Origin: Isurus oxyrinchus
Lineage: Eukaryota
DNA length: 64,000 nt
Assembly: GCA_026770705.1 (NCBI GenBank)
Contig: JANJGN010000007.1
Coordinates: 96,720,001-96,784,000, forward strand
Direction: 5' to 3'
A program made the position numbers and the translations under genes. The notes beneath the pieces were generated by a model. It was not told where the DNA came from. It worked only from the letters and a program-made list of their open reading frames with translations, and made no database searches. Below are positions 31,022 through 62,136 of the stretch, one piece after another (position 1 is the stretch's first letter; each line of letters begins with the position of its first letter).

Positions 31022-31067
31022 ATGTTTTTACTTCCCTGGCTATTGGTGTTGGAGATTAAATGTACAG
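31022..31067 (+). CDS. Gene 1 leader exon (MFLLPWLLVLEIKCT)
   Basis: ATG, hydrophobic stretch, phase-1 donor ACAG|GTATAT. Alternative leader candidates exist (see findings). Confidence 0.55.
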
Positions 31068-32089
31068 GTATATTTTCTTGTTCTTTGACGTAGCGCAAAA
31101 ATGCAGCAGCCGCTGGAAATGTAGTATTTGTTTCTAATTTTATGTGCTTCAATTATTTTTTGTTAATGCTGAACGAATTTTCTCTGAACGGTTTATTGTT
31201 GTGCACATTTCGAAGTTAAAACGTTGGATTTAATGCACGAGGGTGTCTGATTAACATCAATGATATTGGTGCAATTGGATTATGGCAATAACAACATCTT
31301 TTTCAACTTGGTAGATTCTCTGGAATTATTCAGTTTAAGTCTCAGGATATTGTGGAACTTAAAAAATCCAATTTCGCATTTCCCTGCACTACGTTCAAAA
31401 AGGTTGGGTTACCAATATTAATACATAAACCATGTATTAAAAGTAAGGCTATTAAACGTTTTACGCATGCAGTCCTTGCTGCAGTTAATGTTCCTAACAC
31501 TGACTTGGACACCGGTATTGAAACAGGGCGATTATATTATTTATGAACAACCTCGTTAAATGCACAAGGAATTATCTTCAAATGCGTGTGCGAGCATATT
31601 ATTGGTTATAAACCGCATGGATAAAATGAAGTAAGACAACAGACAATTCCGGATTCCAAGGAGAAATTAACCGTGTCTGCTAAACATAATTTAATAGAGG
31701 CAAATACAGTGTGATGTACTTGGATCATATGTAGCAGCATATCGCCCGTGATGACGGTCCGTATGGTCAACGATGGTGAGTTGCAGGAAGATGTGAGATA
31801 TACATGATCTGACCATGACCAGCAAAATAAAACTATTTCCAACTTGAAAGTGGTGTTACAATGTATCAACAGGGCAATTAAATGCTACAGTTGAAAACAG
31901 ACCGGTCAATGTCCCTTCGTCTCAGAGTGACTTCAAGGACTTAAACCACGCGTCGCGCCAATCAAGTATCGTTTGAAGTGCTCCTTGTCTGATTCATGAA
32001 ACCTTCAAGTTCTGTTCGTGAAGGCATGGGCAATTCAAAATGTACCCGTGCAGCTTGCGCTTCACATCAGATCAGTTTTTGTAAGAGCA

Positions 32090-34268
32090 AGCTGAAGTGA
32101 ATTGGCAAATTAGGTTCAGGGACAGCTCAATAGAGATGCAGTGGCTAATATTTAAGGGTATGTTTCAGAATGCTCAGAAGAGATACATTCCAACGAATAC
32201 GAAAACGTCCAAGGGGCGGACACATTAACCGTGGCTAACTAGAAAGGTTAAGGATAGTATCAAACTTAAAGAAAAAGCATATAACTATGCAAAGATAAGT
32301 GGCAGGTCAGAAGATGGGATACAATATAATAAACAGAAAATAATGACTAAAAAACTAATAAGGAGGGAAACATTTGGGTATGAGAGAAAGCTAGCCAGGA
32401 ATATAAAAATAGATAGTAAAAGTTTTTATAAATATTTTTAAAAAGAAAAGAATAAACAAAGTGAGCGTTGGTCCTATAGAAAATGAGAATGGAGAATTGA
32501 GACTGGAATAAAAATAGATCACAGATGAATTGAGCAGGTATTTTGTATCAGTTTTCAATATACAGAATACAAGTAACATCCCAGCATACGCTATAAACCA
32601 CAGATTGGAAGTGGGGAAGGAAGTCAGGAAAACTACATTCTCCAGTTAAGTGATACTAAGTAAACTGTTGGAACTAAGGTCTGACAAGAGCCCAGGCCCA
32701 GCTGGAATTCATCCTAGGGCCTTAAAGGAAGTGTCTATTGAGATAGTTGATGCATTGGTTTTACTTTCCTGAATCTCCCTGGATTCAGGGAAGGTCTCAT
32801 TAGATTGGAAGATAGAAAATGTAACTCCATAATTCAAAAAGAGAGGGAGGCAGAAAGCGAAAATCTACAGGCCAGTTAGCCTAACATCTGTCGGCCAGAA
32901 AATGTTAGAACTATTATTAAAGAAGTTATAGCAGGGCACCTGGATAAGCTCACGGTCATCTGGCAGAGCCAACAGGGTTTTGTGCAAGGGAAATGGTGCT
33001 TCACCAACTTAAGGCAGTTCTTTGAGGAAGTAACATGCTGTGTATAAAGGGGAACGGTGGATGTACTGTACTTAGATTTCCAGAAGGCATTTGATAAAGT
33101 GTTACATCAAAGGTTATTGTGGAAAATAAAAGCTCATTGTATAGTGGGTAACATTTTGTCATAGATAGAAGATTGACTGGCTAATAGGAAGCAGAGAGAA
33201 GGCTTAAATGGGTCTTTTTTCAGGTTGGCATTGAATGATGTGCCACAGAGATATTTCAAGGAGGAGCTTTTAATTTAGGAGCTCTCTCTTTTTTTTACAC
33301 TTTTTATAAATGATTTGGATGAAGGTATCGAAAGGATCGTTGCCAGCTTTGCTGATAACACAAATATAGGTAGGAAAGTAAGTTGTGAAGTGGACATACG
33401 GAGGCTACAAAAAGTAATAAATAGGTTAAGTGAGCGGGTGAAGATCTGGCAAATGGATTATAATGCGGGAAAATGTGAAATTGTTCATTTTGGCAGGAAG
33501 ATTAAAAGAGAAGCATATTATCCAAATGGTAAGAGATTGCAGAGCTCTGATGTGCAGAGGAATCTGGGTGTTCTAGTGCATGAATCACAGATGTCTAGTA
33601 TGCAAGCACAGCAAGTAATTTGGAAAGCCAGTAGAATGTTACCATTTATTGTGAGGCGAATTGAATGTAAAAGTAGGGATGTTATGCTTCAGTTGTACAG
33701 GGCACTAGTGAGGCAACATTTAACGTGCTATGTACAGTATAGATCACCTTATTTAAGGAAGGATGTGAATGTGTTTCGAAGATTTGACAGAAGGCTTACC
33801 AGACTAATACCTGGAATGGGTATGTTGGCTTATGTTGGACAGACTAGGCTTATATCTGCTGGAGTTTGGAAGAGTAAAAGGTGACTTGATTGAAATACAT
33901 ATGATCCTGAGGGGTCTTAACAGAATGGATACGGAGAGGATGTTTCCTCTTGTGTAAGAATTTAGAAATAGGGGTCACTATTTAAAAATAAGCGATCCCC
34001 AATTTAAAACAGAGATGAGGAGAATGTTTTTCTCGCAGAAAGTCATGAGTCTTTGGAACTGTCCTCCTTAAAATTTGGTGGAAGCAGGGTATTTTAATAT
34101 TTTTAAGGCAGAGGTGGATAGAATTTCGATAAGCAAGGAGGTGATGGAATGCAGATTTCTGGATACTCTCAGGTCAGCCATGATCTTATTAGTTCGCAGA
34201 ACAGGCTCGAGGGATTTAATGGTCTACCGTTGGTCCTTGTTCGTAAGTTCGTATGTTCATATGTTCGT
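32090..34268 (+). mobile_element. CR1 LINE RT and 3' end in intron 1 of gene 1
   Basis: ORF 33315-33884 (SFADNT, KCEIVHFG, LYRALVR); tail TTCGTATGTTCATATGTTCGT. Confidence 0.87.
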
Positions 34269-34496
34269 TAATGAGGTATTAAGGCAGAGCAATTCCACAA
34301 GAACACCGTCAGATCTCACAGATTAAAGTGAAAGTGCTACAGTTAGCTCCTGTAGTATTCCATATTGTTGGCTTACAGCTTGCATTTATTCATCAGGAAA
34401 TATTCCTACTTAGCAAATCAATGATTATTGCCAGCAAACCATATGTTCGTGGTATATTCAATTGCTGCTGCATTTATTTGTTCATGATTGTTACAG

Positions 34497-34798
34497 ATGC
34501 GCGGAAAAGAGTGTCCCAAACCCCTGTAAGGGCCAAGGTGGTAGCAGTACTTTCTATTGCGCTATCCCCCTTTACCATGATAATTCCGATGTGAGTATCT
34601 ACTGGTGGAAACTAGGAGAAAATCAATATCTGCACTCATGTGAAGACAAAAAAATACGATTCCTTTCTTTGAGGAAAGGCGTGGCCTCTTTACAGCTCCA
34701 GAATGTTAGCGGTGGTGACTCAGGAGTTTACTTCTGCGGAGTGAGACGTTCCCATAGTCGGATTATAAATGGAACTGGATCCAAGCTTGTTATCAATG
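34497..34798 (+). CDS. Gene 1 V-set exon with fused J-like segment (frameshift at ~34526-34536)
   Basis: Acceptor TTACAG|, donor ATG|GTAAGT. DARKRVSQTP / GGSSTFYC..SIYWWK..ASLQLQNV..DSGVYFC..NGTGSKLVIN. Length 302 nt, not a multiple of 3. Confidence 0.9.
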
Positions 34799-34825
34799 GT
34801 AAGTGGAATGTCTACATGTACTCAT

Positions 34826-34870
34826 TCACACACAGACAGACACGAACGCACAGACACACACACACACACA
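34826..34870. repeat. Imperfect (CA)n microsatellite
   Basis: CACACACAGACAGACACGAACGCACAGACACACACACACACA. Confidence 0.8.
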
Positions 34871-35229
34871 AAGAGAGAGCAAACACGGCCAAACACCTGC
34901 TGACCGATTTAAGATTATATCGTGATTCATAACTTGGACATTAAAGAGTATATTTCATATATTTTAGAATTTAGGCTAAATTCTTATCCAATACCTATTC
35001 TTACTTCGGCATACTCTGGCTCAATTTACATTTGAAACAGACGGGAACTAAAAATAATGCTCGACAAATGCCATTTTGTCGCATTATTTTCTGTATTTAA
35101 CTCCATTTTAGCGAGGGCGAGTGTCCGATTTTCAATGGTAAATCTGATATTTGAATCAGAACATGATGGATAATCTTTTCCCTTTTGTAGCAAGTTAATT
35201 GTGGGAATAAAATCTCTATGTTAATCTCA

Positions 35230-38200
35230 GAATCACAGAAATCACAGAATTGTTACAGCGCAGAAGCAAGCCATTCAACCCATCCTGTCTGCACCGCTCT
35301 CCTAATAAGCAATTCACTGAGTGCCACTCTCCCGCCTCCTCCCAGTAACCCTGCACATTCTTCGTTTCAGATAGTCTAATTCCACTCCGAATGCTTCGAT
35401 TGAACCTGCCTCTACCAAAGTCTCGGGGGGTGGTGGGGGTGGTGGGGGGGGGGGGGGGTCCGGTGGGTGGGGGGTGGGGGGTTCATTCTAAAACGTAACC
35501 AGTCCCTGCAGGATAGGTTTTTCCTCATGGTGTTTTTGCTTATTTTGTCAAACATTTTAATACTGCGCACCCTTGTTCTCGAGCTTTCATGAGTGGGAAC
35601 AGTTTATTCCTATTTACTCTGATCAATGCCTTATAGGTTTCAATAGCTCTATAAAATCTCCCCTCAGCCTTCTCCTCTCCAAAGAAAACAGTCCCAACTT
35701 CTCCAGTGTATCTTCTTAACCGAGGTTCCTTATCACTGGAAACATTCTTCTGAGTCTTTACTGCAGTCTCTGCCATGCCTTCATGTCTTTCCTAAAGTGC
35801 GGCACCCAAAACTGGACACAGTACTCCAGCTGAGGCCTAACTGGTGTCCTGTGTAAGTTCAGCACAACCTCCTTGTTCGTGCATGCTATGGCCCCATTAA
35901 TAAAGCCCAGGATGCTGTTCTTCACCACCACTCTCGTAACTCGCTCTGCCACCTTCAATGACTTATGCACAGATACTCCCAGGACCCTTTGCTCCTGCAC
36001 CCCCTTCAGAGTTGTACCCTTTATTTTCTATTGTATTTCCATATTCTTCGAACCAAAACCAATTACCTGACATTTCTCTGCTTTGAACTTCATTTGCCCT
36101 CTGTCCACCCATTCACCAACGTGCTCTGTCCTTTTGAAGTTCTGCACTATCCTCCTCACACTTCAGAGTGCTTTCAAGTTTGTGCATTATACAAAAACAT
36201 TGAAGTTGTGCTCTGCATACCAAGGCCTAGGTCAGTAATATCCATTAGGACAAGCAAGTGTCCCAAAATTGACACCCGGGGAATTCCACTACAAACCTTC
36301 TTCCAGCCTAAAAGACATCCATTAACCAGTATTGCCTGTTTCCTGTCATACAGCCAATTCTGTACCCATGTTTCTCCTTTCCACTTTATTCCATAAGTTA
36401 TAACTTTGCACAAAAGTCTGTTGTGCAGCATTATATCAAATGCCTTTTCAATGTCCATGTGCACCACAACAACATCATCCTCATCAACCTTATCTGTAGC
36501 TTCTTCAAAAAATATAAACTCCAGAAAATTTGTTATACACGGTTTTCCCTGAACAAATCCATGCTGGATTTCCTTACTTAACACGCATTTGCCCAGGCTT
36601 TTACTTTCTCAACGTTCTCCCCCACCATTCAGCCCCTCCCCCACAGCCATGGAAGTTAACCTAACTCGCCCGGAGTCTCTAGGGTAATCTTTAAAACACC
36701 TTTTAAACAAGGTATAACATTTTCAATTTCCAGTCCCCTGGAGCCACCAGAGTATATGGAAGTCTGGAAAATTATGACCAATGCGGCTGCAATTTCCATT
36801 CACACTTCCCTCGGTATATTTGGACAAATCTCATCCTGCCCTGGTGCTTTATCAACATTAAATATGGAAATCCTCTGCAACTGCACCTCCATTTCAATTT
36901 AAAATCTCTCTAGCGTATTAAATACTGTCCAGTTCCCCTCTGTGATACGTCAGCTAACCCTCCCTGCTTCCATGTGTAAATCCTCTTTTTGGTCTCTATT
37001 CAGCGCAACTCCCCCTTATACCATGATATTACCATTTATATGCATATTGAAGATTTATGTATTCACTGTGATTTTAACTGCCTATCTCTTTTCTTAGCCC
37101 CTTTTTGCTTCCCTTATTTGCTTTTTCAGTTTTGCTCTGAACCTTCTATATGCAGCCTGGTTCTTCGTTATATTGTCTACTTGGCATCTGTCATAAGCCC
37201 ACTTTTTTTCCTTCATGTTAATATCTATCTCTTTTGTCATCCAGGGAGCTCTGGATTTGTTTGCCATATCCTTCCTATTCGAGGGCATATACTGTGCTTG
37301 ATCTACCTCTTCATTGGAGTTAGCTCATTGTTAGCTACTTCTCTTCATGTGAACTGTTGATTCCAATTTATTTGGTCCAGATCCATTTTTACTCCAGTTG
37401 TAGTTGGCTTACCCCAAGTTAATAATTATTACTCCAGATTATTCTTTGTCCTTTGCCATGGCCAATCCAAACCTTTTGATTCAATGATCACGGCACCCTA
37501 ATGTTCTCCTGCTGATCCACTTGGCCGAAATATTTCCCAAAGATCAGGTCCAGCAGTGCCTCCCCTGTCATTGGACTGAGAATATACTACTGTAGGAAGT
37601 TTTCATGGATAGGCTCGAGAAACACTTGCCCCTCTCTGCCCTTTATGCTACTACCATCCCAGTCTATATTCTGATAACCGAAGACCCCATTGTCACTACT
37701 TAATAATTCTTATCGATATCTTCAACTTATTTGCAGATTTGTTCCTGATGTCCCGTCCACTTGTTGTTGGCCTCTAGACAGCACCCAGAAATTCAATTGC
37801 ACATTTCTTGTTATTCAGCCCTAGCCAAAAAGATTCAGCCCTTGACCACTCTGGGACACCCTCTCTCTCCAGCGCTACAATTCTCGCCTCAATCAATACC
37901 ATCACCCCACCCCCATTTTTCTTCCTTTCCTATCTTTCCTGAACACTTCTTATCCAGGAACATTTAACATTCAGTTCTGTCCTTCTTTGAACCAGGTCTC
38001 TGTTATACCCAAATCATCACAGGGAATCTGAGCCTGTAACTCAACAATTTTAGTGACCTCGCTCCACGCATTGACATACATGCATGGTAATCCTGATTTA
38101 GACATCATTCCTTTCTCCCTTACTCTGTCCCCAACTAACAACATACTATTCTTACATACATTCCTTCTCTAGTGCTATCTATCTCTCCTAGGTTTCTGTA

Positions 38201-38520
38201 CACCCTTGGTATTCCTCTCTGACAATCATCTTGCTTCCCATGCCCATGCCAAGTTACTTTAACTTCGGTCAGGCTCTGCATAGGTGCATTCTGTCCGGTG
38301 TGTACAGGTTTCATTTCCCCCAGAGCCGATCCCAATAGCCCAGGAATCTAAAAATCTAAAGTCCTACCTCCTGCACCATTCCTCCAGCACGAATTAATTT
38401 GATTTCAACTCCTACTTTTATTTTCACTTTAGTATGTCTCTGAGAGTAAGTCGGATATTACTACTTTTGATGTTTGGCTTGCTAACCTCCTACTCAGCTC
38501 TCTAAATTCTGACTGCAGGG
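35230..38520 (-). mobile_element. CR1 LINE, decayed, in intron 2 of gene 1 (G-rich tract at ~35425-35481)
   Basis: AATCACAG tail at ~35230-35250; minus-strand ORF pieces QHGFVQGKPCITNFLEF and VRPQLEYCVQFW. Confidence 0.82.
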
Positions 38521-39202
38521 CCATCTCGGTGTCAGCAGAATTCTGGATTTAACTTCAAAGTCTTCTGCATTTCCCCTGTTATTCATTTTCTCCTGCTTTC
38601 CTTTGCATTCGGGTGAATTACTAAACTTACTGTATTTTCAAATTAGCTTTCCCTATACCCTTCTGAGTAATTACTTAAAATCCATCCCTATCTTCGGAGT
38701 TATGACATCTTCAGTCAGCATGTCTTTAAGTATCCAATTTAGGTGGATGTTGTTCGAAATGCTATTTTAAACTACTTGTAAACAAATTAATCATGAATTA
38801 GTCAAAAACTTTGACATGTAAAATATGACGAATTTCAAACCACATTTATGACTGATTATTTTATATGCTCTATGTTTAATGTTGAAATATTTATTTGATT
38901 TTAAATTCCTCCAACCTTTTCTATCTTGCATTTATACATTTTCCATCATGACTATTGATGATGTTATTATTTATTTCACCAGTGTCACTTTAGACATTGT
39001 AATCCGTTAATCGATGGGACGTATTTTAATTTGTTGTGGAATGTTAGATCAGCATCGCTTGTTTGTCACACAGAAAATAAAAAAAACATCAATCTCTTTA
39101 AAAATGAAACTGCTATTTGCTGTATATACAGTTTTACTTTTGTACTGGATTTGACCTAGCAGAAAATGTAATAACTTACAACATTCTGAAATTGTTTTAC
39201 AG

Positions 39203-39511
39203 TTCCCCCAACCCCACTGCACATTCACCGCCATATGATTAAACGTAATGCATCAGCTTATCTGATGGTTGTGTGTAAAACCTCTGAATTTTACCCAGGG
39301 ACTACAACAATTACTTGGTACAAGAATGGCGTGAATGTTGGGATCGGGATAAACACAATTCTGCAGCTAAATGCAAAAGGTCTGTACGAACTTTCCAGCA
39401 CTTTGGAAGAAACGCAACCTGTCAAAAACGGGACTATGTATACCTGCCAGTCATCTCATCTCAACGTCCAAAATTCCATTGCCTATCAATTTATTTCAAC
39501 TAGCACTGGAG
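39203..39511 (+). CDS. Gene 1 C1-set Ig domain exon
   Basis: Acceptor TTTTACAG|, donor GAG|GTACAA, 309 nt open: VPPTP..VVCKTSEFYP..ITWYKNG..NAKGLYELSSTL..YTCQSSH (C1 hallmarks FYP, W-x-K-N-G, Y-x-C-x-x-x-H). Confidence 0.92.
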
Positions 39512-39829
39512 GTACAAGTAACATTTCGAACCATTGAAAAGGACATCTGATAAATATATATTCGTAATTCAGGAGTATTTATCTTAACACTAATACATGT
39601 AAAGATATTATGAATACAATTTTTATGTTGAATCCAAACCTAGGTTTTGCTTCAACTCGTGTATATGGGCATCATTGGCAAGGCCAACAATTAATGCCCA
39701 TGTTTGTTTGCCACAAAAGGTTTTGCGCACATACTTTTTAAAGTGATGTAATTTTGGTAATGAATATGCACCCGCAATGCTGTGAAGGCACATGCAGAGG
39801 AGAAAAATTAGCAGTGGGAAATGGTGAAG

Positions 39830-42790
39830 TGTCAACTGATAACGAGGATATATTAGAGCGTTGCATCAGGTAGTTAGAATACTCGGAGTGTTTGATGGAA
39901 TTAGAGTAGCCAACAATAAGTCATTAAATGGGGTCAAGATAAACAAGAAAATTTTTAAAAGCCTAAATCAGGGCTAATGTGTATGCACGTATGGAGTGTG
40001 ATTAATTAGATTGGTGAACTGCGGGCACAGGTTGACAAATGGAATTATGATGTTATTGCTGTAACAGAGACGTGGCTCAGCAAGGACAGGACTGGGCGTT
40101 AAACATTCCTGGGCATAAGGTGTTTAGGAGAGACAGGAAAGAAAGAAAAGTGGGGAGTGGGCGTGGTCGAGTGGTAATATTGGTTAAAGATGGTATTACA
40201 GCAGTGGAAGGAGAGGGTGTTCCAGAAGGGTCAAGGGCAGAATCTCTCTGGCAAGAGATAAGGAATGAGAGAGGTGGACTAACGTTGACTGGTGTAGTAT
40301 ATAGGCCACTTACTAGTGGAAGGGATGTGGACAAACAAGCTTGCAAAGGTATTACGGAGAGGTTCAAACGTTATAAAGTAATCAATAAGGGACTCAAATA
40401 TTCAAATATAGATTGAGATATAAAAAATACAAAAGGACAAGAGGGGCGAGCGTTTCTGGAATGTGTTCAAGACAATTTTCTACAGTCCGACAAGAGGACA
40501 TACAATTTTGGAAGTGGTTCTGGGCCATGTAGATCAAATATCAGTGAGGAAGCATCTAGAGGGCAGTGGCCATTTTATCATAGGGTTTAGGTTAATCAGG
40601 GAAAGGACAGAGAACAATCCAGAGCAGAAATAATTAATTGGGGAAAGCCAACTTCGATGGGATAAGATGTTTCTGAACCAAGTGAGTTGGGATCAAATGT
40701 TGGCAAAAAAAAATAGCTGAACAATGGACCAACTTCAAAGGAAAAGTATTGTAGGCAAATTTAAAATATATTCCCTTGAAGGGGAAAGGTAGGACAAGTA
40801 AACCCACAGTGCCCTGGATGACGAAAGAGATAGAGGTAAAGATGAAAAGGAAGAAGTACGCATACAACAGATGTCTGGTAGAAAATGCAATGGAGAATCA
40901 GGCTGAATATAGAAAGAAAAGAGGGGAAGTGAAGAAACTAATAAGAAAAGCGAGGATAGAGAATGAAATGTATTGGCAGCGAACATAAAAGGAAACCTCA
41001 ATGCCTTCTCTATGCATGTTAATAATAAAAGGATGGTAAAAGCAAGAGTAGGGTCGATTAGGGGCAAAAGGGAACTTGCATGTGAAGGCTGTAGAAATAG
41101 CGGAGGAGTTGAACACTTTTTTTTTTCTGCCTTTATAAAGAAAAAGCTGGCTACCCATATGGATTTGAAAGAAGAGATAACTGCTATACCAGAAGAACTT
41201 ACAATTGAATGGAAGGAGGTGTTGGAACGACTATCTTGATTTAAAATAGATAAACCACCGGGACCAAATGAGATGCATCCAATGGTCCTGAGGGTGGAAA
41301 ATGCAGAGGCAGCAGTGATAATCATGCAGTCTTCCTTAGGCACAGTGGGTGTGCCAGAGGATCAGGGAATTCTGTAAGTTACACCCTTGTTCAAAAAATT
41401 GTGCAAGGATATAACTGGCAATCACTGGCCAGTCAGCTTGACCTTAATGGTCGGTAAACTTCTGGAAACTATAATATGGGACAAAATCAAAATCGCTTAG
41501 TCAAGTGCACGTTAAGTAAGGAAAGCCAGCATGGATTCATCAAGGGAAAATTATTTTTAACTAACTTTCTGGAGTTTTTTAAAGAGATAAAAGAGAAGGC
41601 TGGTAGGGGGAAAGCTGTTGATGTGGTGTATATGGATTTTGAATAGGCATTTGATACAATGACACAAAACAGGCCTGTGAGCATATTCTAGGTCATAGAC
41701 TAAAAGGGAAAGTCGGCATTTGGATAAGAAATCGGCATGAGTGAGATGAAACAGAGAGTAGTGATAAATGGTTGTTTTTCAAATTGGAAGAGGGTTTGAA
41801 GCAGAGCGCCTCAGGGGTCAGTGTTGGGACGCTTGCTCTTCTGCATTATATTATTGACCTAGGCTGTTGTGTGCCGAACATGATTTCAAATTTTGAAGAT
41901 GACAGTAAGATTGGAAACGTTGTCAATTGTGATGGGGATAGCCTCGAACTTCATAAGTGCATAGACATGCAAGTGGATTGGGCAGATAAATGGCTGGTTA
42001 AGTTCAATGTGATAATTGTGAGGTGATTCGTTCTGGCAGGAAAGATGTGCTGGGATAGTTTAAAATACAGGGAGATCCTCTAAAGGAGTTGCAGGAATAT
42101 ATGGACCTCTGTTTATATGGTCACTGATGATGGCAGGGCATGTGGAGTGAGCAATAAATAAATCATATAGTCGCTTAGGCTTTATTAATAGTAGCATTGA
42201 ATACAAGAGTAAGGAAGTCGTGATGACCTTGGATAAGGCAGTAGTTAGGTTTCATCTGGAGTACTGCATCCAGTTCTGGGCGCCATACTTTGCGAAGGAT
42301 GTGAAGGCATGGGAGACAGTACAGAGGGAATTCACAATAATGATTTCTGGGATGAAGAACTGTAGCTATGAGGATCGATTGGGGAGGTTGTGAATGCTTT
42401 CCTTGGAGAAAAGAACGCTGAGAGGAGACTTGGAGAAGAGTCTTCGTAATCTTGTGGGTAAGTAGTGAGAAAGTGGTCCCACTCAACAGAAATCCAAAAA
42501 CTAGAGGACAGAGATTCAAAATATTTGCCAAATTGATTTATGTGAGGAAAACTTTTTTTCACCCAGAGGGTGGTTGGAGCCTGGAACAAATTTCTGAAAG
42601 AGTGTTTGGGACATGCTCGATCGAGATACTTAAAAGGGAACTGGATTGCTTCCTGAAAATGAAGAATGTGCAAGCTTATGGTGATAAGGCAGGAGAGTGG
42701 GATTAGAAGGAATGCTCTTTCAAAGAACCAGCGCAGATTCAGTGGGCTGAATGTCCTCTTTCTGCACTTAGTAAACTGTGATGCTTTGAA
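39830..42790 (+). mobile_element. CR1 LINE (APE-RT-3' UTR), decayed, in intron 3 of gene 1
   Basis: VTETW..DWALNIPGHKVFRRDR, GVVYRP, SNFEDDSKIG motifs; CR1 3' end at ~42740-42790. Confidence 0.85.
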
Positions 42791-43596
42791 TTTTGATCCT
42801 GCAGTGATGAAGGAGTACAGTTGTATGTCCAATTATTGGTAGATACTCAGGAGGAGAATTTCAAATTCTGACTGAGACGGGAAAATGTTATCATTGATCC
42901 AGACTTGATCCCTCATATCATGGAAATTCCTCGGCATTTTTTGATATTCCTTTAAAAACACATAAATAAGTTTTCGATATGTATTGGAACAATAATGTGG
43001 AGTAATTAAACATTGCTAGGTCTACCTGCATGTGTGTTTGTATTAAACTTTTCTAATTAGAAGGCTGAGCTACGGTAGTGTGTTTGCTTTGGCTAAGAAT
43101 AGAAACCAAAGGGCGGAATACTGATCTGGCAATGCTAGTTTGAGAATTTGACTTCAGTTACAAAATGCTGGAAATAAAATTCTGGCTGCAGTAAAAGTAA
43201 CCATGGAGGTATTTCATTGTAGAAGCAGCAACGCCAGGCCACCACAATGCCAACGTATCCAGGAATCATGTTTCACACTTAACTCTTAGTTAGCTGCACA
43301 ATTGTGACATGCATTATAACGCAAAAGCCCGAACATGGCTTCTTTGAATATTGTTATGGGGGATGAACTAAAATATATGGCACGTTTTAAAATTACAATA
43401 CTAAAATTGTCTGACGCATATTTAACCAAGACTTGAAATGTGGAAGAAAAAAAACTGATGGCTCATAACATGCTTAGTAGTCCTTTAATATTATGGAAGT
43501 CCAGAAAATCGAAACTTCAAATAGATTGTAGGCGAAGTGGGAATGGAAGACACACGTGCACAACCTCAAATTTTATTTTTAATATTCATTTTACGG

Positions 43597-43710
43597 AAAA
43601 TGAGATTATATTGCGGTATATACATGTCTATGGATGCACAGGAGGTGGAATCTTGATTCTAGTTTTCGTGGTCGTCATGAGGAAGAGATATCCGATGATA
43701 ACATGTAAAG
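43597..43710 (+). CDS. Gene 1 transmembrane exon (acceptor appears mutated AG>GG)
   Basis: T-rich tract then TTACGG|; ENEIILRYIHVYGCTGGGILILVFVVVM-RKRYPMITCK; donor AAG|GTAGGA; 114 nt, phase 1-1. Confidence 0.75.
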
Positions 43711-43939
43711 GTAGGAAATAGTCCTGTTGACTTCAGTTCCGCTGTAACTTTCTTCTATTTCTATGATGAGGTGAAGACATTTCAGGAAGCATTGAGGTAT
43801 GCTGATGATAAACTTGACTAAGTGGCAGCACTCTAAACTCATATTAATTGATAGGAGAGCTAAACATATAAACAGGTGCAGAACAGGGAAAGCTCCTTTA
43901 GCTGATATCCTAAACTGAGATTTCCTCTACAGGATGAGC

Positions 43940-44215
43940 TGGATTTTAAAAAAATATCCCATGGTGTTGTTTAAGGAATAGCTGGAATGGTCTCTCGGCC
44001 GCCGGTCAAACATTTATTTCCCAATGCACATGGATAAAACATTTGAATTGCTTATTTATCCCATCGCTGCACATGAGAGCTACCGTGCCCAATTAGCGGC
44101 TGCATTTCTTATATTAAAACAAAGATTAAAGTTCCAAAGTATTTACTCGGCTGTGAAGCACATGAGGACGTCTAAACACCGTGGATACCGATGTCAAAAT
44201 ATAAGTTATTTCTGC
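43940..44215 (+). mobile_element. Deu-domain-type SINE remnant
   Basis: Degenerate match, from memory, to the DeuSINE core and L2-like tail (..CAATTAGCGGCTGCATTTC..AAAGTATTTACTCGGCTGTGAAGCAC..GGACGTC). Confidence 0.5.
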
Positions 44216-44899: not shown

Positions 44900-44943
44900 G
44901 GACAGAGAGTTCCATGGAGCGGGCAGAACACTCTGAAGATCAG
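44900..44943 (+). CDS. Gene 1 cytoplasmic exon 1 (GTESSMERAEHSEDQ)
   Basis: Acceptor TTACCAG|, donor CAG|GTAGGT; phase 1 to 0 joins the TM exon to the last exon in frame. Confidence 0.72.
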
Positions 44944-45399
44944 GTAGGTCTTATTATTCATTCTGATATGTTTCTGTACAAACAGAAAATTGGTGATGAC
45001 ATGCTTTGGTAGATGCTATGAGGATGAAACATGTCACTTAACCATTTAAGGGAAAACACATTTTTCCTAAAGTATCTACTTCAGATTTGAACGAGAAAAT
45101 TCTAAATTCCATGTTTTTTCCTGCAGAAATTCATTGTGGTCTTTAAATATCATTGCAAATGTTTCCCTCAGATATAACACACGTAGAATAATTTTGATGC
45201 AGTCAGTCACAACAGCATAAACTTTAAGGTACATACATGCATGTGCATGTACTGGCAGAACACATTGATCCCTTCAGGTACTGTTTGTTTTTTTCTGCGA
45301 AGGGAAAACCGTGCATCTTTCTCAGAACTCGACATTTAAGTCTCCTCAGTCAGGTTTCTTCCCCACCCTATATGAAATTGATTGTTAGACAAATGACAT

Positions 45400-46892: not shown

Positions 46893-47030
46893 AGTTCAGA
46901 AAATGAGATGGTGCCTTACGCTGCATTGACTTTCACCAGGTCAATTAAAACGGAAAGTGCAACGGATCAAGTGGAGATGACTGATTATGCCCAGGTACGT
47001 TTAGAAACAAAAAAACCCCGCAAATCTTGA
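46893..47030 (+). CDS. Gene 1 last coding exon with ITIM (VPYAAL, 46911-46928) and ITSM (TDYAQV, 46980-46997)
   Basis: Acceptor AATTCAG|; SSENEMVPYAALTFTRSIKTESATDQVEMTDYAQVRLETKKPRKS*; too short for the ORF track. Confidence 0.85.
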   Translation, partial: SSENEMVPYAALTFTRSIKTESATDQVEMTDYAQVRLETKKPRKS

Positions 47031-47549
47031 GGGCAGGGTAAATTTCGCTTGAGGTGTTAACATTCTGAATCGTGGTTGTTTTGACTGGTGAGAAAACTGA
47101 AAATGGACACGTGCTAATTATACTTTTACAAAACTTGCTGTATAGATAATGCAAGCCGCAGTAGACACCAATCCGACACACCCCGCTCCAGCGTTGTTTG
47201 GCTCCAGGAAAACAGAAAAGGCTAATCGGAATGACCAAAAATCAGAATATGCACAGTTACGGGAGAAAACTCCATGACAACAGCAGATACCACCTGCTAC
47301 GAAAGGGAAATCACCTAATGTTTCGAACTATGTCGTGGTTACCCGTGATAGCCAATACATTAGTTTGCATCTTTATTGTGATTCTGCCATCAAACTTTTA
47401 GGGGCAACTTGCTTTAACAGGCAAATGCATCAACTGGTATCGGTCTGTTTTGTAAAACGTTATCTCGCCATGATACTGACACAGACGACTTCTTGAAAAC
47501 ATCAGTATGAATATAATTTCTTCGTTTTGTAACCAATAGCTTAAAGTTT

Positions 47550-53340: not shown

Positions 53341-54588
53341 TTAGATTGACAGCATCCGCAACATTATGCTTTTGAATAATCCTTGAAGGCAATATGATCA
53401 AACAGAGAATATAGAAGTACAATAATTGTCAAACGTACCAGAAGGAATATTAAGTTGCATGTCATATGCTCTGGATTGTTATGGTGTGGAAAACACTGCT
53501 TGAAACGGTCCTGGGGGTAGATTTAATAGTACAATAAAAAAACACAGTTATTTACATGCAGTGTTATGGGGAAAAGTAGGAAATTGGAACTAATTAATTG
53601 TGTTTTTTCCCAAAGATCTGCTATACGTACAATGGCCCGAATGGTCTCTCGCACTGCTTCATGATGCCATATGGCAAAATTATCAATCACAACAATATTT
53701 GCCTTGTATAATTTATTTTATGCAAACCACCAAACAGAGAATGTGCAGCTGTTCCTCTTAGAGCTGAGGAGGCTAAGAAAATAATTTATAGAGGTGTCCT
53801 AAATTATGAACTATATAAATAGAGTACGCAAAGAGAATTTGTTTCCAGCAACAGAAGGGTTTATAATGAGATGACATTGATTAAAGGTAAATTTTGAAAA
53901 CAAGTATTTAAAAAAACAGAAACAACATGGAAAAAGTGCTTTTATGCTTCGAGTAACCCGGGTTTGGAATACACTGCCTGAGAAGATGACTTCAAAAGCA
54001 CATTAGATAAAAACTGAATTAGACAAAGTTATCAGTATATTGGGAAAAATGGAGGAGTAGAACTATGTGGATTGCTCTTCTACAGAGCATTTGCAGACAC
54101 TATGCACCAAATGGCTTCAAACAGTAGAAGGAACAAAATGACTTAGGTCAGGAGTGGGCTATTTTGCCCATCAAGCCTGCTCCAAGATTCAATGAGGTCA
54201 TGGTTGATCTGGTTCTCGTCTCAGATCGACTTTTGTGCCTGACTGCCCGCCTCTACCTACCCAATACCATTGACTTCCTTGCCTAATTTAAATTTGTCAA
54301 ACTCTACCTTAAGTAAATTCAAAGGCCCGGTCTCCACTGATTTCTAGGGAACATAATTCCACACACCAACGCCCCTTTGGGAGAAAACGCTTCTCTCAGC
54401 TTTGCCTTGATAGGGAGACCTTTGATTATTTTGGTACATCCTCTCTCCTAGCTTTAGTCTTCCCTACACGACGAAACATTTTCTGGTTATCAAGTCCCAT
54501 CAGGATCTTATATGTTTCAATAAGATCACCTCTTATACTTCTAAATTCCACTGGGTATAGGGTACACTGTTCAACCTTTCCTCATAAG

Positions 54589-57500
54589 CGTTATGGCAAG
54601 CGGACAGTGAATGTAATGCTGCCCAAGTCCCAGAGGGAAACTTGAAGCAGCTGCAACAACTATTTGCAATTTGTACTTATATCGAGATGTGGGCTTTGGA
54701 TTCAGTTAAAAAATGCTACCAAGTCTTATCAGTTTCTTACAAAACTAACTTAAATATTTATTAATAGAAGAGTTAAGCTAAGCACATACATAGATCAACA
54801 ATTTAATACTATGGTAACTTCTCAGTTCCCTAATTAATCTAAACCCCAGTTATGCCTTTGCTAAGGCAGCAGTGAGAGACACAGATTTCAAAAGACCCAG
54901 GCAAAGTAAAACACAATACCCTGAGCAGTCGAATTCAAAGTGAGTTTTTCTCAGCTTCAGTTGCTTGTAAACAACAGCTTGAGGTTTAGACGTTGGAGGC
55001 TTTTCACACTTTTGTTAGACCTTAGCATTCCTGCCCCTACAGACAACCTTCACTGGTTTATACATATTTTCCCCTTTGAAAGAAAATTCCCATTGTTTCT
55101 CCATGTCTTAGGACGTGTACCTCTCAAACGTTTTTATTCATTCAGGGGATGTGGGCGTCGCTGGCTGGGCCAGAATTTATTGCCCATCCCTAATTGCCCT
55201 TGAGAAGGTGGTGGTGAACTTCCTTCTTGAACCGCTGCAGTCAATATGGTGTAGGTACACTCACAGTGGTGTTAGGAGGGGAGTGCCAGGATTTTGACCC
55301 AGCGACAGAGAATGAACAGCAATGTATTTCCAAGTCAGGATGGTGAGTGACCTGGAGGGTGGTGTTCCCATCTATCTGCTGCCCTTGTCCATCTAGATGG
55401 TAGTCGTTTTGGGTATGGAAGGTGCTGTCAATGGAGCCTTGGTAAATTTCTGCAGTTCATCCTGTAGATGACACACACTGCTACTACTGCGCATCAGTGG
55501 TGGAGGGATTCAAAGCTTGTGGATATAGTGCCAATTAAGCTGGCTGATTTGTCCTGGATGGTGTCAAGCTTCTTGAGTCTTTTGGGAGCTTCACCCATAC
55601 AGGCAAGAGGAGAGTATTGCATCACACTTCTGACTTGTGCCTTGTAAATGGTGGACAGGCTTTGGGGAGTTAGAAGGTGGGTTATTCGTTGCACAATTCC
55701 TAGCTTCTGTCCTGCTCTTGTAGACACAGTATTTATATGGCTAGTCCAGTTCAGTTTCTAGTCAATGGTAAGCCCCAGGATGTTGATAATGGCAGATTCA
55801 GTGATGGTAATGCCATTGAACATAAAAGGGTAATGGTTACATTCTCTCTTATTGGAGATGGTCATTGTCTGACACTTGCGTGGTGCAAATGTTACTTGCC
55901 ACTTGTCAGCCCAGGCCTGGATTTTGTCCAGGTTTTCCTGCATTTGGACATGAATGACTACATTATCTGTGGGGTCATGAATGGTGCTGAACATTGTGCA
56001 ATTATCGGCGAGTATCCCTACTTCTGACCTTATGATGGAAGGGACGTCATTGATGAAGTAGCTGGAGATTGTTGCACCGAAGGCACTACCCTGAGGAGCC
56101 CCTACAGTGATGTCCTGGATCTGAGATGACTGACCCCCCAACAACTGTAACAACCTCCCTTCGTGCTAGGTATGAATCTAACCAGTAGATTTTTCCCCCG
56201 ATTCACATTCCTTCCACTTTTTCTAGGGCTCTTTGATGCCGCATTTAGTCAAATGTGGCCATGATGTCACGGGCAGTCACTCTCACCTCACCTCGGGAGT
56301 TCAGCTCTTTCGTCCATGTTTGAACCAAAGCTGTAATGAAGTCAAGAGCTGAGTGGCTCTGGCAGAACCCAAACTGGGCGTCAATGTTCAAGTTGTTGCT
56401 AAACAAATGCTTCATGACAGCACTGTTGATGGCCCCTTCCATTATTTCGCTGATGATGGAGGGGAAACGGATGGGTCGATAATTGGCTGGGTTGGATTTG
56501 TCCTGCTTTTTGTGAACAGGACATAGCTTGGAAATTTTATAGCCGGGTAGATGCCAGGTGTATTGGAACAGCTTGGCTAGGTACGCAGCAAGTTCTGGAG
56601 CACTGATCTTCAGTACTATTGCCGAAGTATTGTCAGGGCTTGTAGCCTTTGCAGTGTCCAGTGCCTTCAGCCATTTATTGATATCATGTATAGTGAACCG
56701 AATTGGATGAAGAGTGGCACCTGTGATGCTGGAAACCTCCGGAGCAGGCCGAGGTGAATCATCCACTTGGCACTTCTGTCTGGAGATTGCAGCAAATGCT
56801 TCAGCCTTATTTTTTTCACTGATATGCTGGTCTCTTCAATAATTAAGGTTAGGGATATTTGTGTAGCTTCCTCCTCCAGTGAGTTGTTTAATTGCCCACC
56901 ACCATTCATGACTGGATGTGGCAGGACTGCAGAGCTTTGGTCTGATGCATTGGTTGTGGAATAGCTTAGCTCTGTCTATCACTTGCTGCTAATGTTGTTT
57001 GGCGCACAAGTGGTCCTGTATCATAGCGTCACCAGGTGACACTTCATTTTTAGGCATGTATGGTGCTGATCCTGGCATACCCACTTGCACTCTTCACTGA
57101 ACCAGGGTTGATCCCTTGCCTTGATAGCAATGACAGAGTGGGCGATATGCTGGCCAATAAGGTTACAGATTGTGTTCGAGTACAATTCTGCTGCTGCTGA
57201 TGGCCCACAGCGCCTCATGGATACCCAGTCCTGAGTTGCTAGATCAGTTCGAAATCTATCCCATTTAGCACGATGGTAGTGCCACACAACATGATGGAGT
57301 GTATCCTCAAGGCGAAGATGGGACTTCGTCTCAACAAAGAATGTGAGGTGGTCACTCATGCCGATATTCTCATGGACAGTAGAAATCCATAATATAACGT
57401 TAAAAATACATCAAAGTACCAATTTTACCAGTAATTCTTGGGTACAAAATGCACACTGCTTCATAACTCCTCCTGGCTCGTTGAAACATTTCAGCCCCAC

Positions 57501-57733
57501 TTTTGAATTCAACATAGTCTGGTTTATTTAAAACTGCTAATGTTCCCTTTAAACATATGTTTACTTAATAAACATTTCAAACATGGCTTACGTTCTGTTA
57601 CATCAAAACCTTCAGGCCGGCTGCTTCTAATTCAATTAAGTCCTCTCCTCCGTACACAAAAACTCATAGACACAGGCCTCTGCTTTACAATAAATTCCAA
57701 TAACATTATGTAAGTTATTATCTCTTTTTGACA
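54589..57733 (-). mobile_element. Probable solo LTR (~0.9 kb) split by a LINE
   Basis: Termini CGTTATGG (TG>CG) ... TTTTGACA, flanked by ATAAG / ATAAT; non-coding; interrupts a CR1. Confidence 0.5.
55130..57385 (-). mobile_element. Second-family CR1/L2-group LINE (RT and 3' end)
   Basis: ORFs KSNPANYRPI, DAQFGFCQSHS, PQGS..LADNCTMF, LSTIYKAQVRS. Confidence 0.87.
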
Positions 57734-59663
57734 ATAATACAACCCATTCACCCCAGCAATGAGTCCAGTGAACCTTCTCTGAATTGCTTCCAATGCAATT
57801 TTACCTTTTATTAAAATAGGGAGATCGAAACTACACACAGTTCTCCAGAAATGATCTCAGCAGGGCTCTGTACAGCTGCAGTAAAACTTCATTACTTTTA
57901 TATTTCATTCGTCTTTTAATAAAAGGCAATATTTCATTTGCTGTACCTGGATACTAACGTTTTGTGATTCATGAACCAGGACACAACTCTGTAACTCAGA
58001 CTTCTGCAGTCTTTCTCCATTTAAATTTTATAGTGCTTTTCTATCCTTTCTGCAAAAGTGAACGGGTTCACATTTACTCACGTTACCCATGTGCCAATTT
58101 TTTGCCGACTCACTTAACTTGTGTACATTCGTTTGCCGACGCTCTACCTCAACTTGAGAATTTACTTTCCCATCGATTTTGGTGTGATCGGCAAATTTAG
58201 CTACCATACATTCTCTCGCTTCAACCAAGTCATTGATATAGATCGTAAGTAGTTGAGGGCCCAGCTGTTCTATGGTTTTGTGATAAATAATGTGGTATTG
58301 TTCAAAGATTGAGGCTAAAAAATAAATTAAAATATGGATGTGAATAAATAATTCCGCATTTTGCTTTCCACTGTTTTTAATTGTGTACAAACTTCTAAAC
58401 AGCAGCTTCCAAACTGTTTTTTCCGAAATTCAATATGCTAATTTGCCTTTGCGCTTTTATTGATAAGGCGAGTGGCGTTATCAGAAGCAGAATGGTACAT
58501 GGTCTTTGACGGCTAATCGGTGTAGTTTTTGATCAGGTGAACTGGATTATCAATGATCTGGCCAACACTTGCCCTTAGCTTGCAGTCGGCGTCATGAACA
58601 AAGCTGCTTATAAAGTATGCAATGTGTATACATCATATATCATTATGATGTCCTCAACTATTTGAAAAAAAGCCCCTCAAAATCTCCGAAAGATTTGTGA
58701 AACACTGTACTCATTAATAAAGTTGTTTTGACTCGCTCCAATCTTATGATGATTTTCTCTGTGCACTCTTACTACTTGCCTGCAGATGGAAAGGTTGTTT
58801 CACAAGATAAAATGCAGAATGAGATTTACTACAAAATATTTTCTGAAATGATCACATGATGCTTGTTTCTATAGACACATTGAATATTTAAACAGAATTC
58901 CAACAATCCCAAAAAAGATTGCGTTCCATCTCGCTCAGCTGTTAAACATATGTGCTAAATTTTATTTCAGCACATTTTGAAGTTGTGACTCTAAAGCAAA
59001 AAAATCATGATCATGAAATGCATGCAAAATCTACTGATATTTTAAAAAACAAATCAGGCTTAGGATGTGGATATCGCTGGCAAGTTCTGCTTTCATTGTC
59101 CACCTGCGTGTGATGTGTAAGGTGATGTTTACCCGCCGTTAATTAAGCATTACTTCATCAAATATTTGCCATTGATTATCTGCCATCTTACCTTTAAATC
59201 GAGTTTCTAAATCTATCTTAGTCGACTCGAGACTCATATCTGGGTAGTTTGCTTTGCCTAGCATTGAAATGCTAGCTTCAGGCTAAATCAAATCACTTTA
59301 AAAATAAATTTAAAATGATATAATGTCATTAATCACAAGATCTTGTTGCATTCGTTGTCAATGTCACAACATTTTCATTGTTCTAAAACAATTCGTTTGA
59401 GCATTGGTGTGATACATAAAACTGTCTTCTAAGCCAATTTATGCGGTTTAATATGCCTTGATCACCACGCTGAAAGGTGTGGTCTTCATTTCATCTCAGC
59501 TAAAACCTGCATTGTGTGATATTCTAATGATGCAATGCTCTTGGCTATACGTGTGAAGCGTATCTCTTCATCTTTCTCATTGCACGACACTGCTTTAAGG
59601 CCAGGTGCTCCCGACTTTGTTTCTCAATTAACAGCCCTTTGGACGAAATAGATTCTCCGTGAA

Positions 59664-59715
59664 GGGGCGGAGAAAAAAACGTTTCTTGTTGATTGGCAAC
59701 AAATAGCAACTTCCT
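59664..59715 (+). promoter_or_regulatory. Candidate TATA-less promoter of gene 2: GC box, inverted CCAAT, ETS site
   Basis: GGGGCGGAG 59664-59672, ATTGG 59692-59696, ACTTCCT 59709-59715, directly upstream of the leader-like exon. Confidence 0.5.
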
Positions 59716-59896
59716 TTATTGAGCTTGACTGCTTCATTGTTTCGTGATCCTGGGATTGGTTGCTGCAGGTATTTTTTGTAATCGCCTCTTAAATCTAAGT
59801 TTCTGTATATTCGGTTCTCAGACTTGCATCAATTTGCCATCAGGTTTGATACGTTTAACGTTTTGGGACAATGCTTTCTTTTATCTTTTACATTAG

Positions 59897-60210
59897 TTGG
59901 TGATGTTCTGTTCTAGGTTTTACAAAGCCCCCAACCAAGATTGTGATGATCGGTGAAAATGTTACTTTCGCCTACACGTTCCCTCTTTTTTCCAATAATT
60001 CAGATGTAAATATTTACTGGTGGAGACTCGGCGAAAATATATTTATGCAACCAAGCTCAGACAGGCGGAAGCGATATTTTTTGAGGAAAGATCAGTGTTC
60101 TTTTCAGCTTCTTGATGTCGGTTTCCAAGATGCTGGTGTTTATTACTGCGGAGTCAAACACCGGCGGAACATGATCCAAAACGGAACTGCATCTAAGATT
60201 ATAGTTCACG
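59897..60210 (+). pseudogene. Gene 2 V(J) exon
   Basis: VLQSP/PTKIVMIGENVTFAY..NSDVNIYWWRLGEN..DAGVYYCGVKHRRNMIQNGTASKIIVH; clear homology to gene 1 (NSDVxIYWWxLGEN). From the 59896 acceptor there is a TAG and a 1-nt deletion; an alternative acceptor at 59915-59916 gives an open frame. Confidence 0.88.
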
Positions 60211-61825
60211 ATAGGTAAGACGGCAGGACATTTTCATGCTGATAATTCAAAAAAAAAAAGAAAATTTCAATAAACACAATCTAATGGCTTATTCCGCTTT
60301 TAACAATTATCTTGGTCGATTGGCTTTACATGTTGTATATTATCGCTTCGCATTCACAATAGGAAACCAAATACAGTGTTTTTAGCACGATGATTTTAAT
60401 CGTAAGCAGGGCAAGCAACGCACTGTTGAAGCCAAATTTTGGAGATTGTGAAATTATCTGAAAATGTTTTTATAACTTTTCGGCTGGATTTGTTACAATA
60501 CATTCTGATTGGCTGTCCATGTTTTTGAAACTGTGTTTCAGATTGTGCATATCCTCACGACCCAAAAAGAGAAAATTTGACAACTGTAAAATCTATTATC
60601 GAGTATAATGACCTAATAGCTTCATTAGTTGAAGCTAATGACAGACATTGATATTGAAGGAACTGCCTATAAGTCACGTCATGTATATAAGCGAAGGTGC
60701 TTCAGCGGGAGCTGGTCCATACTCAGTCAGTTGTACCTTATTCCACTGTTTAACGCATTGCAACTCACAAAGCACGATATTCTTGGTTTTAGAACAAAAA
60801 TAATTAAATTATCCCGAAACTTAAATTAATATTTTAGAAAAATGGTAAAGTATTTATTAGTACAACATAAAGTGAATGCCTATAGTTCTTTGCACTTCGT
60901 CAATCTGCCCCAATTTTTCGCTTAATTCGGCGGAATACCTGTGGAAGCGGCGATGAAGCCACGTTTTGTGTAGACATTTCGCAGGCTGAAGATGACCAGT
61001 CCGGGTGACTGGGTGGGGTGATGTAGGGAAAGGTGGGTGGGGTTTGGCTGTTGGTGGTAGCACAGATCACTGCTGCTTTGTGCAAATTCAAGAACTTGCA
61101 CTTCAACTAGATTTTGAATCCATGCATTCATTTGTGTGTATTGTGAACAAAGGTAGGTCCATGGCTCATTGTCCACTGATGCCTCACCCAGCCCTTTCCC
61201 TTGGCAGTGTTTTTGTCAGTGCATGTTTTTCATTACCTTCCACTGAAATTTCAAGGTATATGGAAGTAAGTTAGGCTAATACTTGGACTTGTTAGTGAGG
61301 TATCAACCTCCGTTAGGCCTCTTGTATTTGGGTTGGATATCCAACCAGGTTTGCGTGATTTTCTGTGGAAGAAAATTAACCTACAGAATTGTTCTAATAC
61401 ATGGAGGCTGTTGTCCCTATATTTTATCTTTAATGCCTCTGTTAATCCATAAGCATAATTAAAATTAACTACCATTCCTACTTGTTGGGCATTCTGATTG
61501 AAGAAGCATAGGCCTTGTTTTTGTGAGCATTACAAATAGACTTCCGCTGGAAGTTAATTTCCTGTGAGTGTGAATTTTGAGGTATTTTTAAATGGCGCGA
61601 GATTCCAGTCTACCGATGATTATGTGCCTTGATCATGTATGCAACAGATGGCTGCAACATAAATGCAATAAGCAAATGTACAATTTAAGTGAAGCAGAAA
61701 GAGAAAATACCGATCATGAAATGATGCTACTTGATTTACTTTCGTACAAAGGGATGTAAGAGTAAATAATCTTCTAAATGCGGAACACCGTATTTATTTT
61801 TGTTTTCCTCTGCGCCTCGATTTAG

Positions 61826-62136
61826 CTCCGCCTGCTTCCCCGACTATTGTCTCCAAAATTTCTAGCGGAATTTCACCACGCATGTGCTTTTCGTTTCGTA
61901 TGTGAAACGGCTGGCGTTTACCCGGAAATACTTACCCTTAGTTGGTACAGAAATAATAGCAATGTTGTAACCGGAATTAAAACAACAACACAGCTTGACT
62001 CAGCGGGACGAGGCTTCCAGTACATTGGAAGAGGCACTGCCAATCCAGAAAGGGACATATTGCATCTGCGTGATATCTCATCCCACGCTCCAGGCTCCGA
62101 AAATAGATGTTCATCTTGTATCCAACTGGAACGCGG
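61826..62136 (+). pseudogene. Gene 2 C1-set exon
   Basis: Acceptor TTTAG|, donor GCGG|GTAAGA. APPASP.. / FVCETAGVYPEILTLSWYRN..QLDSAG / EASSTLEE..YCICVISH in three pieces; ~5-nt deletion at the G-L-Y-E motif relative to gene 1. Confidence 0.88.

Follow-up and report, generated by a model that had tools for sequence, protein, structure and literature searches.

Probable pseudogenes of a germline-joined VJ-C1 membrane receptor family of cartilaginous fish in a 64-kb stretch of the Isurus oxyrinchus genome

We describe two sets of immunoglobulin (Ig)-superfamily exons in a 64,000-nucleotide stretch of the genome of Isurus oxyrinchus (assembly GCA_026770705.1, contig JANJGN010000007.1, positions 96,720,001 to 96,784,000 of the forward strand), hereafter the window, whose own coordinates are used throughout. 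Apart from these exons, the 64-kb window is transposon-rich DNA in which no other host gene was found. Both sets, which we call gene 1 and gene 2, are on the + strand, within the interval from 31.0 to 62.1 kb (Table 1). They are very probably pseudogenes of a multigene family of type I membrane receptors in cartilaginous fish (chondrichthyans), neither of which can make a receptor. An open, spliceable frame was found in neither: the exons include lengths of 302, 298, and 311 nucleotides (nt), one splice acceptor reads GG, one leader has no ATG, and one V domain has exchanged Cys23 for Tyr.

An earlier sequence-only reading of this DNA had recognized two same-strand V exons with a built-in J-like G strand, each followed by a true C1-set exon. 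That observation is real, and the kind of gene was correctly identified. The V exons are supported by direct reading, by Pfam, and by a family hidden Markov model (HMM), and the C1 exons by Pfam (C1-set cut-off, 21 bits) and, for gene 1, by the same HMM. Both C1 exons show the family pattern (a VPPTP or APPxP start, then FYP…W[YC]K…Y.C.[VS]SH), that of gene 2 being recognizable across three reading frames. The HMM, built from 25 full-length relatives and run on 3,238 stop-to-stop fragments of the window, matched pieces of gene 1 and gene 2 exclusively and detected no further C1 domain beyond one per gene; gene 1 has a single C1 exon between its V and transmembrane (TM) exons. The occurrence of V, C1, TM, and tail exons here far exceeds chance expectation. 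Any exons of gene 2 located 3' of its C1 exon would fall past the end of the window.

Table 1. Exons and exon relics of the two receptor-like genes in the window (ITIM, immunoreceptor tyrosine-based inhibitory motif; ITSM, immunoreceptor tyrosine-based switch motif)
Feature	Position	Strand	Observations
Gene 1 leader exon	31022-31067	+	MFLLPWLLVLEIKCT; ATG, phase-1 GT donor; tblastn match to P0005 leader NMFILPWILVLEITYT
Gene 1 VJ exon	34497-34798	+	302 nt, out of frame; Pfam V-set 34.4 bits; family HMM 117 bits
Gene 1 C1-set exon	39203-39511	+	309 nt, phase 1 to phase 1, intact; Pfam C1-set 41.7 bits; family HMM 135.8 bits
Gene 1 connecting-peptide/stalk and TM exon	43597-43710	+	NEIILRYIHVYGCTGGGILILVFVVVMRKRYPMITCK; GG at expected AG acceptor; family HMM 23.2 bits
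Gene 1 first tail exon	46900-46994	+	ITIM VPYAAL, ITSM TDYAQ(I/V); family HMM E 6e-6
Gene 1 terminal exon, partly decayed	47146-47277	+	SEYAQL kept; stop 47275-47277; family HMM E 0.001
Gene 2 leader relic	59729-59768	+	LLHCFVILGLVAA; without ATG
Gene 2 VJ exon	59917-60214	+	298 nt, phase-2 donor; Pfam V-set 26.9 bits; family HMM 132 bits
Gene 2 C1-set exon	61826-62136	+	311 nt, three reading frames via two frameshifts; fragment Pfam C1-set 20.1 bits

Each V exon runs in one uninterrupted frame from the F-strand YxC motif through a short complementarity-determining region 3 into a J-like strand (gene 1, NGTGSKLVI; gene 2, NGTASKIIV) and from there into a GT splice donor. The J spacing G-x-G-[ST]-x-[LI]-x-[IV] is seen in both, with Ala for the second Gly (G124) in gene 2, and by HMM score both conform to the single V-plus-J-like exon of the family (…Y.C…NG[TN]G[ST].[LI].[VI]), which is phase 1 at both ends. 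No heptamer of a recombination signal sequence (RSS; CACAGTG or CACTGTG) occurs within 600 bp of either V exon. Because the heptamer is absent and V continues directly into J and a splice donor, the proposal of germline-joined VJ exons without an RSS is confirmed, and neither gene shows the RSS-ended V and separate J segments of rearranging Ig and T-cell receptor (TCR) genes. The family shares with Ig light chains and TCR chains a two-domain V(J)-C1 ectodomain; it differs from them in having no RSS or separate J segment, in carrying its own TM segment and signalling tail, and in the residue preceding G-x-G, which is Asn instead of the Phe or Trp of the FGXG motif in Ig and TCR J segments. This Asn creates an N-G-T sequon, and a glycan at that site might, speculatively, block V-V pairing. 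The residues N121, G122, and G124 are invariant or nearly so across the family, and all three are kept in gene 1.

The frame of gene 1 is broken within its VJ exon. Although both borders of this exon are phase 1, its length is 302 nt, and the leader frame reaches a stop after 31 codons: the A strand (ARKRVSQTPVRAK) is read in the leader frame, and the remainder (GGSSTFYC...YFCGV...NGTGSKLVIN) in another. Relative to P0005, the closest intact relative (…FQAPESAQVIAGGNITFQC), about 10 nt are missing after QTP. A second lesion affects the TM exon, where the only acceptor position that would keep the phase reads GG, not AG (…cattttacGG/AAAATGAG, the slash marking the exon start). Two substitute acceptors were considered and rejected: the nearest AG upstream of the TM exon (43548-43549) is out of phase, and a cryptic AG at 34536-34537 in the V exon restores the frame at the price of the A strand and has no pyrimidine tract.

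These lesions could in principle be sequencing errors, allelic variants, or steps bypassed by alternative splicing, in which case gene 1 would be a working inhibitory receptor. Open reading frames persist in its well-conserved C1, TM, and first tail exons (the C1 exon is 61% identical to P0005, and the TM exon aligns residue for residue to P0005 residues 238-274 with 46% identity and a tblastn E of 1.2e-6), the V domain retains its canonical Cys, Trp, and J residues, and the cryptic V-exon acceptor offers a route, however costly, back into frame. We nevertheless consider a working gene 1 very unlikely. An independent read-derived contig from the same organism, at a depth of ~39, is identical to the assembly over 34400-34817 and thus spans the V exon, so the frame lesion is not an assembly slip; the gap relative to relatives is ~10 nt long and is therefore no homopolymer slip; and the single gene would have to survive two independent lesions. 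A second read-derived contig spans the C1 exon without a gap.

A relative that we designate organism B, ~96% identical in the C1 region, has A for T at 34527, which replaces Val with Glu, the usual family residue, and carries a net 8 extra letters within 34400-34593; the extra letters would be consistent with a V-exon deletion specific to I. oxyrinchus, and at the lesion itself organism B appears to have about 10 nt more. The alignment of organism B to the V exon ends at 34593, with indels, and the rest is unaligned at 85% identity, which suggests that the V exon has diverged quickly, or has been rearranged, between closely related species. The leader intron of gene 1 measures 3.4 kb, against 148 nt in gene 2, and contains a fragment of a long interspersed nuclear element-type open reading frame (ORF) at 33315-33884 (+); the intron thus appears to have been stretched by transposon insertion from the classical short split-leader form.

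Gene 2 carries at least five lesions. No ATG exists anywhere within 59640-59768, and two in-frame TGA codons stand just 5' of the leader relic. The B-strand Cys23 is Tyr (TFAYTF), and the length of the V exon puts its donor in phase 2 where phase 1 is needed. Aligned by tblastn to the family protein P0182, the C1 exon is read in frame 1 over 61825-61857, in frame 2 over 61898-62008, and in frame 3 over 62010-62138. The V exon is 61-63% identical to P0182 and P0020 (tblastn). Neither copy is therefore intact, gene 1 on account of the V-exon frame and the GG acceptor and gene 2 on account of its accumulated damage.

Only in gene 1 were the conserved stalk GC, the TM segment, and the YAxL and xYAQ tail motifs found. 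The TM exon and the ITIM-plus-ITSM tail ascribed to this gene are indeed present, and at the level of motifs (ITIM VPYAAL, ITSM TDYAQ) the tail is inhibitory in type, as had been proposed. The stop at 47028-47030, however, is probably not its ancestral end. A consensus donor, CAG/GTACGT, lies at 46994, directly after TDYAQ and upstream of that stop, and 150 nt downstream of it the terminal exon begins with a phase-0 AG acceptor that fits this donor. The terminal exon matches P0005 residues 323-358 (tblastn E 0.008) and P0172 residues 284-323 (E 0.001); the first tail exon, for which an alternative acceptor exists at 46893, matches P0005 residues 285-325 with 49% identity (tblastn E 1.4e-5). 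Given the donor and a homologous, phase-matched exon, the ancestral tail was likelier a four-unit one, with VPYAAL (ITIM), TDYAQI (ITSM), a second ITIM now decayed, and SEYAQL. The decayed unit reads NPTHPAPAL where relatives have NLTYAALEL, and the family tail consensus, …YAxLxL…TVYAQTKQ…LTYAALxL…TEYAxx, matches the same four-unit pattern. The string GAAAATGAGAT is common to the starts of the TM exon (43596-43606) and the first tail exon (46899-46909); in this context its G belongs to a good AG acceptor at the tail exon, while the TM-exon acceptor reads GG. The shared string may be due to chance or may be the trace of an exon duplication.

A HMMER (phmmer) scan of the gene 1 V exon against 1.84 billion representative proteins returned 224 matches, dozens of which are proteins of 220-420 amino acids that combine a single V domain with J and C1 motifs, a TM segment, and tyrosine motifs. 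Members of this family were found in at least 17 chondrichthyan species, and every member whose source was looked up comes from a cartilaginous fish: from sharks (Heptranchias, Heterodontus, Mustelus, Scyliorhinus, Carcharodon, Cetorhinus, Hemiscyllium, and Chiloscyllium), from rays and skates (Mobula, Hemitrygon, Hypanus, Pristis, and Amblyraja), and from the chimaera Callorhinchus. Within each species, the members lie on one large contig. Among the 150 best representatives, no bony-vertebrate protein has the same architecture. Three word-indexed searches (with the whole protein, the family profile, and the C1 region) returned chondrichthyans only, through an index that is insensitive to distant kin and hence silent on bony-vertebrate relatives, and a search of a protein atlas returned only generic Ig clusters.

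The sequence-only reading had suspected a poorly described multigene family of cartilaginous fish. As far as these searches reach, the family is indeed restricted to chondrichthyans, and our literature search found no paper that describes it; the shark literature from 2023 to 2025 available to us gives UrIg and UrIg2 as the retained non-rearranging antigen-receptor genes and leaves the family unmentioned. Its members are, however, already in public protein sets, under automatic NCBI names that conflict with one another: SIRP-alpha-like, SIRP-beta-like, Ig lambda-1 light chain-like, tapasin-related-like, NCR3 ligand 1-like (NCR3LG1-like/B7-H6-like), CD276 homologue, and MHC II beta-like. What is new here is thus two dead members of a publicly annotated but hardly described family, which by themselves are of modest interest.

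The two copies belong to different branches of the family. In trees built from the V and C1 domains, the gene 1 C1 domain groups with proteins of Heptranchias, Mobula, Hemitrygon, and Pristis in one clade (support, 0.955), whereas the gene 2 V domain is nearest to Mustelus and Heptranchias proteins, at 62-64% identity. The V domains of the two genes are only 44-45% identical to each other, and this distance, together with their separate subfamilies, indicates old lineages standing side by side, not a recent duplication. The gene 1 subfamily predates the split between sharks and rays, and the gene 2 subfamily the split of the shark orders. Two dead copies from different old subfamilies make the locus a decaying stretch of an old array. 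The idea of a tandem birth-and-death cluster thus holds in part: because both copies are dead, a birth-and-death history fits, but the window contains no working tandem family, and its two members are not recent tandem duplicates.

We scored 104 family proteins for TM segments and tail motifs. Both a TM segment and tyrosine motifs are present in 47 of the 104, a TM segment without such motifs in 34, and the remaining 23 are truncated. Charged-TM forms, which the sequence-only reading had proposed to look for, do occur: 7 of the 34 motif-less members carry a charged residue in the TM segment. This division among the 104 proteins suggests paired inhibitory and activating forms. Three proteins from rays and sharks, P0006, P0007, and P0179, which lie in or near the gene 1 subfamily, carry an Arg within the TM helix or next to it; their tails, 12-19 residues long, contain no tyrosine motifs, and the three are candidate activating counterparts.

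An intact gene of this family would comprise a split leader, a VJ exon, a C1 exon, an exon for the stalk (with a conserved Cys) and TM segment, and tail exons in which YAxL-type (ITIM) and [TS/V]xYAQ-type (ITSM-like) tyrosine motifs alternate. By analogy, intact members most likely would act as inhibitory receptors: the V domain would bind a ligand, Src-family kinases would then phosphorylate the tail tyrosines, and the SH2 phosphatases SHP-1 and SHP-2 would be recruited to the tail and damp the activation of the cell. The short-tailed members, some of which carry a charge in the TM segment, may serve as activating partners, and the stalk cysteine could form dimers. The model for this mechanism is SIRP-alpha, which inhibits through tyrosine phosphorylation and the recruitment of SHP-1 and SHP-2 (PMC12975943).

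Several considerations weigh against our reading of the two genes as pseudogenes of an inhibitory receptor family. The signalling mechanism is argued from the resemblance of motifs. No RNA run of the species contains the locus, and both copies are presumed to be silent. The read comparison spanned 34400-40300, and the single-base lesion at the TM acceptor lies outside that interval. Finally, the read contigs may derive from the same sample as the assembly, so that they rule out a slip of the assembly, though not an artefact of somatic or library origin.

The ectodomain had been likened to that of a TCR or Ig light chain, with one VJ and one C1 domain, and structural comparison bears this out. 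An AlphaFold model of P0005, in which the confidence measure pLDDT exceeds 90 over most of the V and C1 domains, has antibody light chains as its best Foldseek matches (E ~1e-16, 20-25% identity). Scored per domain against the PDB, the family profile gives 67.9 bits for Ig lambda V-C, 65.5 for SIRP-alpha d1-d2, 53.3 for UrIg2 V-C1, and 47.9 for SIRP-alpha d3; the d1-d2 match is one contiguous V-C1 stretch, and d3 is the best single C1 domain among the matches listed. On these scores the closest solved relatives by sequence appear to be Ig lambda and SIRP-alpha, with UrIg2 lower. A V-only profile was swamped in the PDB by multi-Ig proteins (titin, Robo, and contactin among them).

The SIRP-alpha scores bear directly on the hypothesis that SIRP (PTPNS1, CD172a) has its cartilaginous-fish orthologue or co-orthologue in this family and that the window genes are SIRP pseudogenes, which we regard as doubtful. 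The two systems share a V domain with a J-like strand followed by a C1-set domain, a single TM segment, a multi-tyrosine ITIM-type tail, and short-tailed paired forms. The family tail alternates YAxL and xEYAx motifs, and the four tail tyrosines of SIRP-alpha alternate in the same way. The commonest automatic NCBI name for family members, 'tyrosine-protein phosphatase non-receptor type substrate 1-like', points in this direction as well, as do the few members with two C1 motifs, such as P0027. Ig lambda, however, scores equally high, and no SIRP ranks in the top 60 PDB matches when the V exon, the C1 exon, or the V-only profile is searched. SIRPs consist of one V-set and two C1-set domains (PMC12975943), whereas a single C1 domain is found in both window genes and in the majority of family members. 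Of the SIRP hallmarks of an ITIM tail that recruits SHP-1 and SHP-2 and of CD47 as ligand, the family shows the tail motifs. The grouping with SIRP draws on profile scores.

That the family is instead a cartilaginous-fish branch of PRARP is possible, and we entertain the idea tentatively. PRARP, as Fu et al. are said to have described it in 2019, is reportedly a receptor with a non-rearranging VJ domain, a C1 domain, a TM segment, and an ITIM tail, present in bony fish, amphibians, reptiles, and birds. The architecture, with its single-exon VJ, one C1, TM segment, and ITIM tail, is the same as that of our family. The two differ in that PRARP is described as a pair of genes in bony vertebrates, whereas the chondrichthyan family forms a large array, and the searches described above, within the limits of the word index for distant kin, brought up no bony-vertebrate protein of this build. 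The PRARP work of Fu et al. 2019 (J Immunol 202:1992) is cited in PMC10751288.

Membership of the window genes in the shark NCR3 (NKp30) family or in UrIg/UrIg2 we consider highly improbable, although some features are shared. The VJ domain is encoded in a single exon, the C1 exon matches UrIg2 (9dmx) with an E of 2.9e-9, and the family profile as a whole scores 118 bits against UrIg2 (E 3.8e-33). The J-like strand contains an NGT sequon, and the J-like strand of NKp30 has the same one. UrIg, said to have been described by Flajnik et al. in 2023, reportedly has several C domains and no TM segment. UrIg2 has nine C domains (PMC12227049). UrIg and UrIg2 resemble the family as elasmobranch genes with a non-rearranging single-exon VJ, a split leader, and C1-type domains, but they have many C domains, are single-copy, and are without an ITIM tail, whereas the family is multicopy and occurs also in the chimaera Callorhinchus, its one C1 domain being followed by a TM segment and an ITIM/ITSM tail. 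In gene 1, the VJ exon is followed not by several C domains but by one C1 exon and then the TM exon, and per domain UrIg2 scores below both Ig lambda and SIRP-alpha. NKp30 and shark NCR3 (Kinlein et al. 2021) likewise place a non-rearranging VJ domain on a membrane receptor and are multigene in sharks. NCR3, however, is described as a VJ-domain gene, with UrIg introduced as the novel VJ-C1 gene (PMC12227049, PMC10751288), whereas the window genes have a C1 exon and show no special similarity to NKp30, which neither the V exon nor the V-only profile finds among its 60 best PDB matches. No family member bears NCR3 as its automatic name.

The remaining interpretation is that the family represents an undescribed germline-joined VJ-C1 lineage that occurs throughout the cartilaginous fish and is separate from SIRP, PRARP, NKp30, and UrIg/UrIg2. 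We consider this unlikely as matters stand, though by no means negligible. The search for non-rearranging VJ-C1 genes is a search for relics of the gene whose splitting by the RAG transposon created antibodies and TCRs; in the shark literature available to us, UrIg, UrIg2, and NCR3 are the only relics of this sort that are named (PMC12227049, PMC10751288). Such a family, large and with members in sharks, rays, and a chimaera, would add a third kind of relic. If its independence is true, the family would be one more survivor descended from the pre-RAG antigen-receptor precursor, and it alone among such descendants would combine a large multigene array with an inhibitory tail; with its many copies, it would allow tests of diversification without rearrangement. 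The locus in I. oxyrinchus adds little to this question alone, documenting as it does the 'death' half of birth-and-death evolution.

The remainder of the window contains recognizable remnants of mobile elements. A Penelope-like retroelement occupies 16626-20486, with a reverse transcriptase ORF at 18278-19936 (+; Pfam RVT_1), then a GIY-YIG-type ORF at 19239-20486 (+), and an inverted partial copy of the Penelope-like nuclease ORF at 16626-16955 (-). A Harbinger-type transposase fragment lies at 24887-25186 (-), in a G+C-richer block that extends from 18 to 26 kb; its match to Pfam DDE_Tnp_4 reaches 23.2 bits, just below the cut-off.

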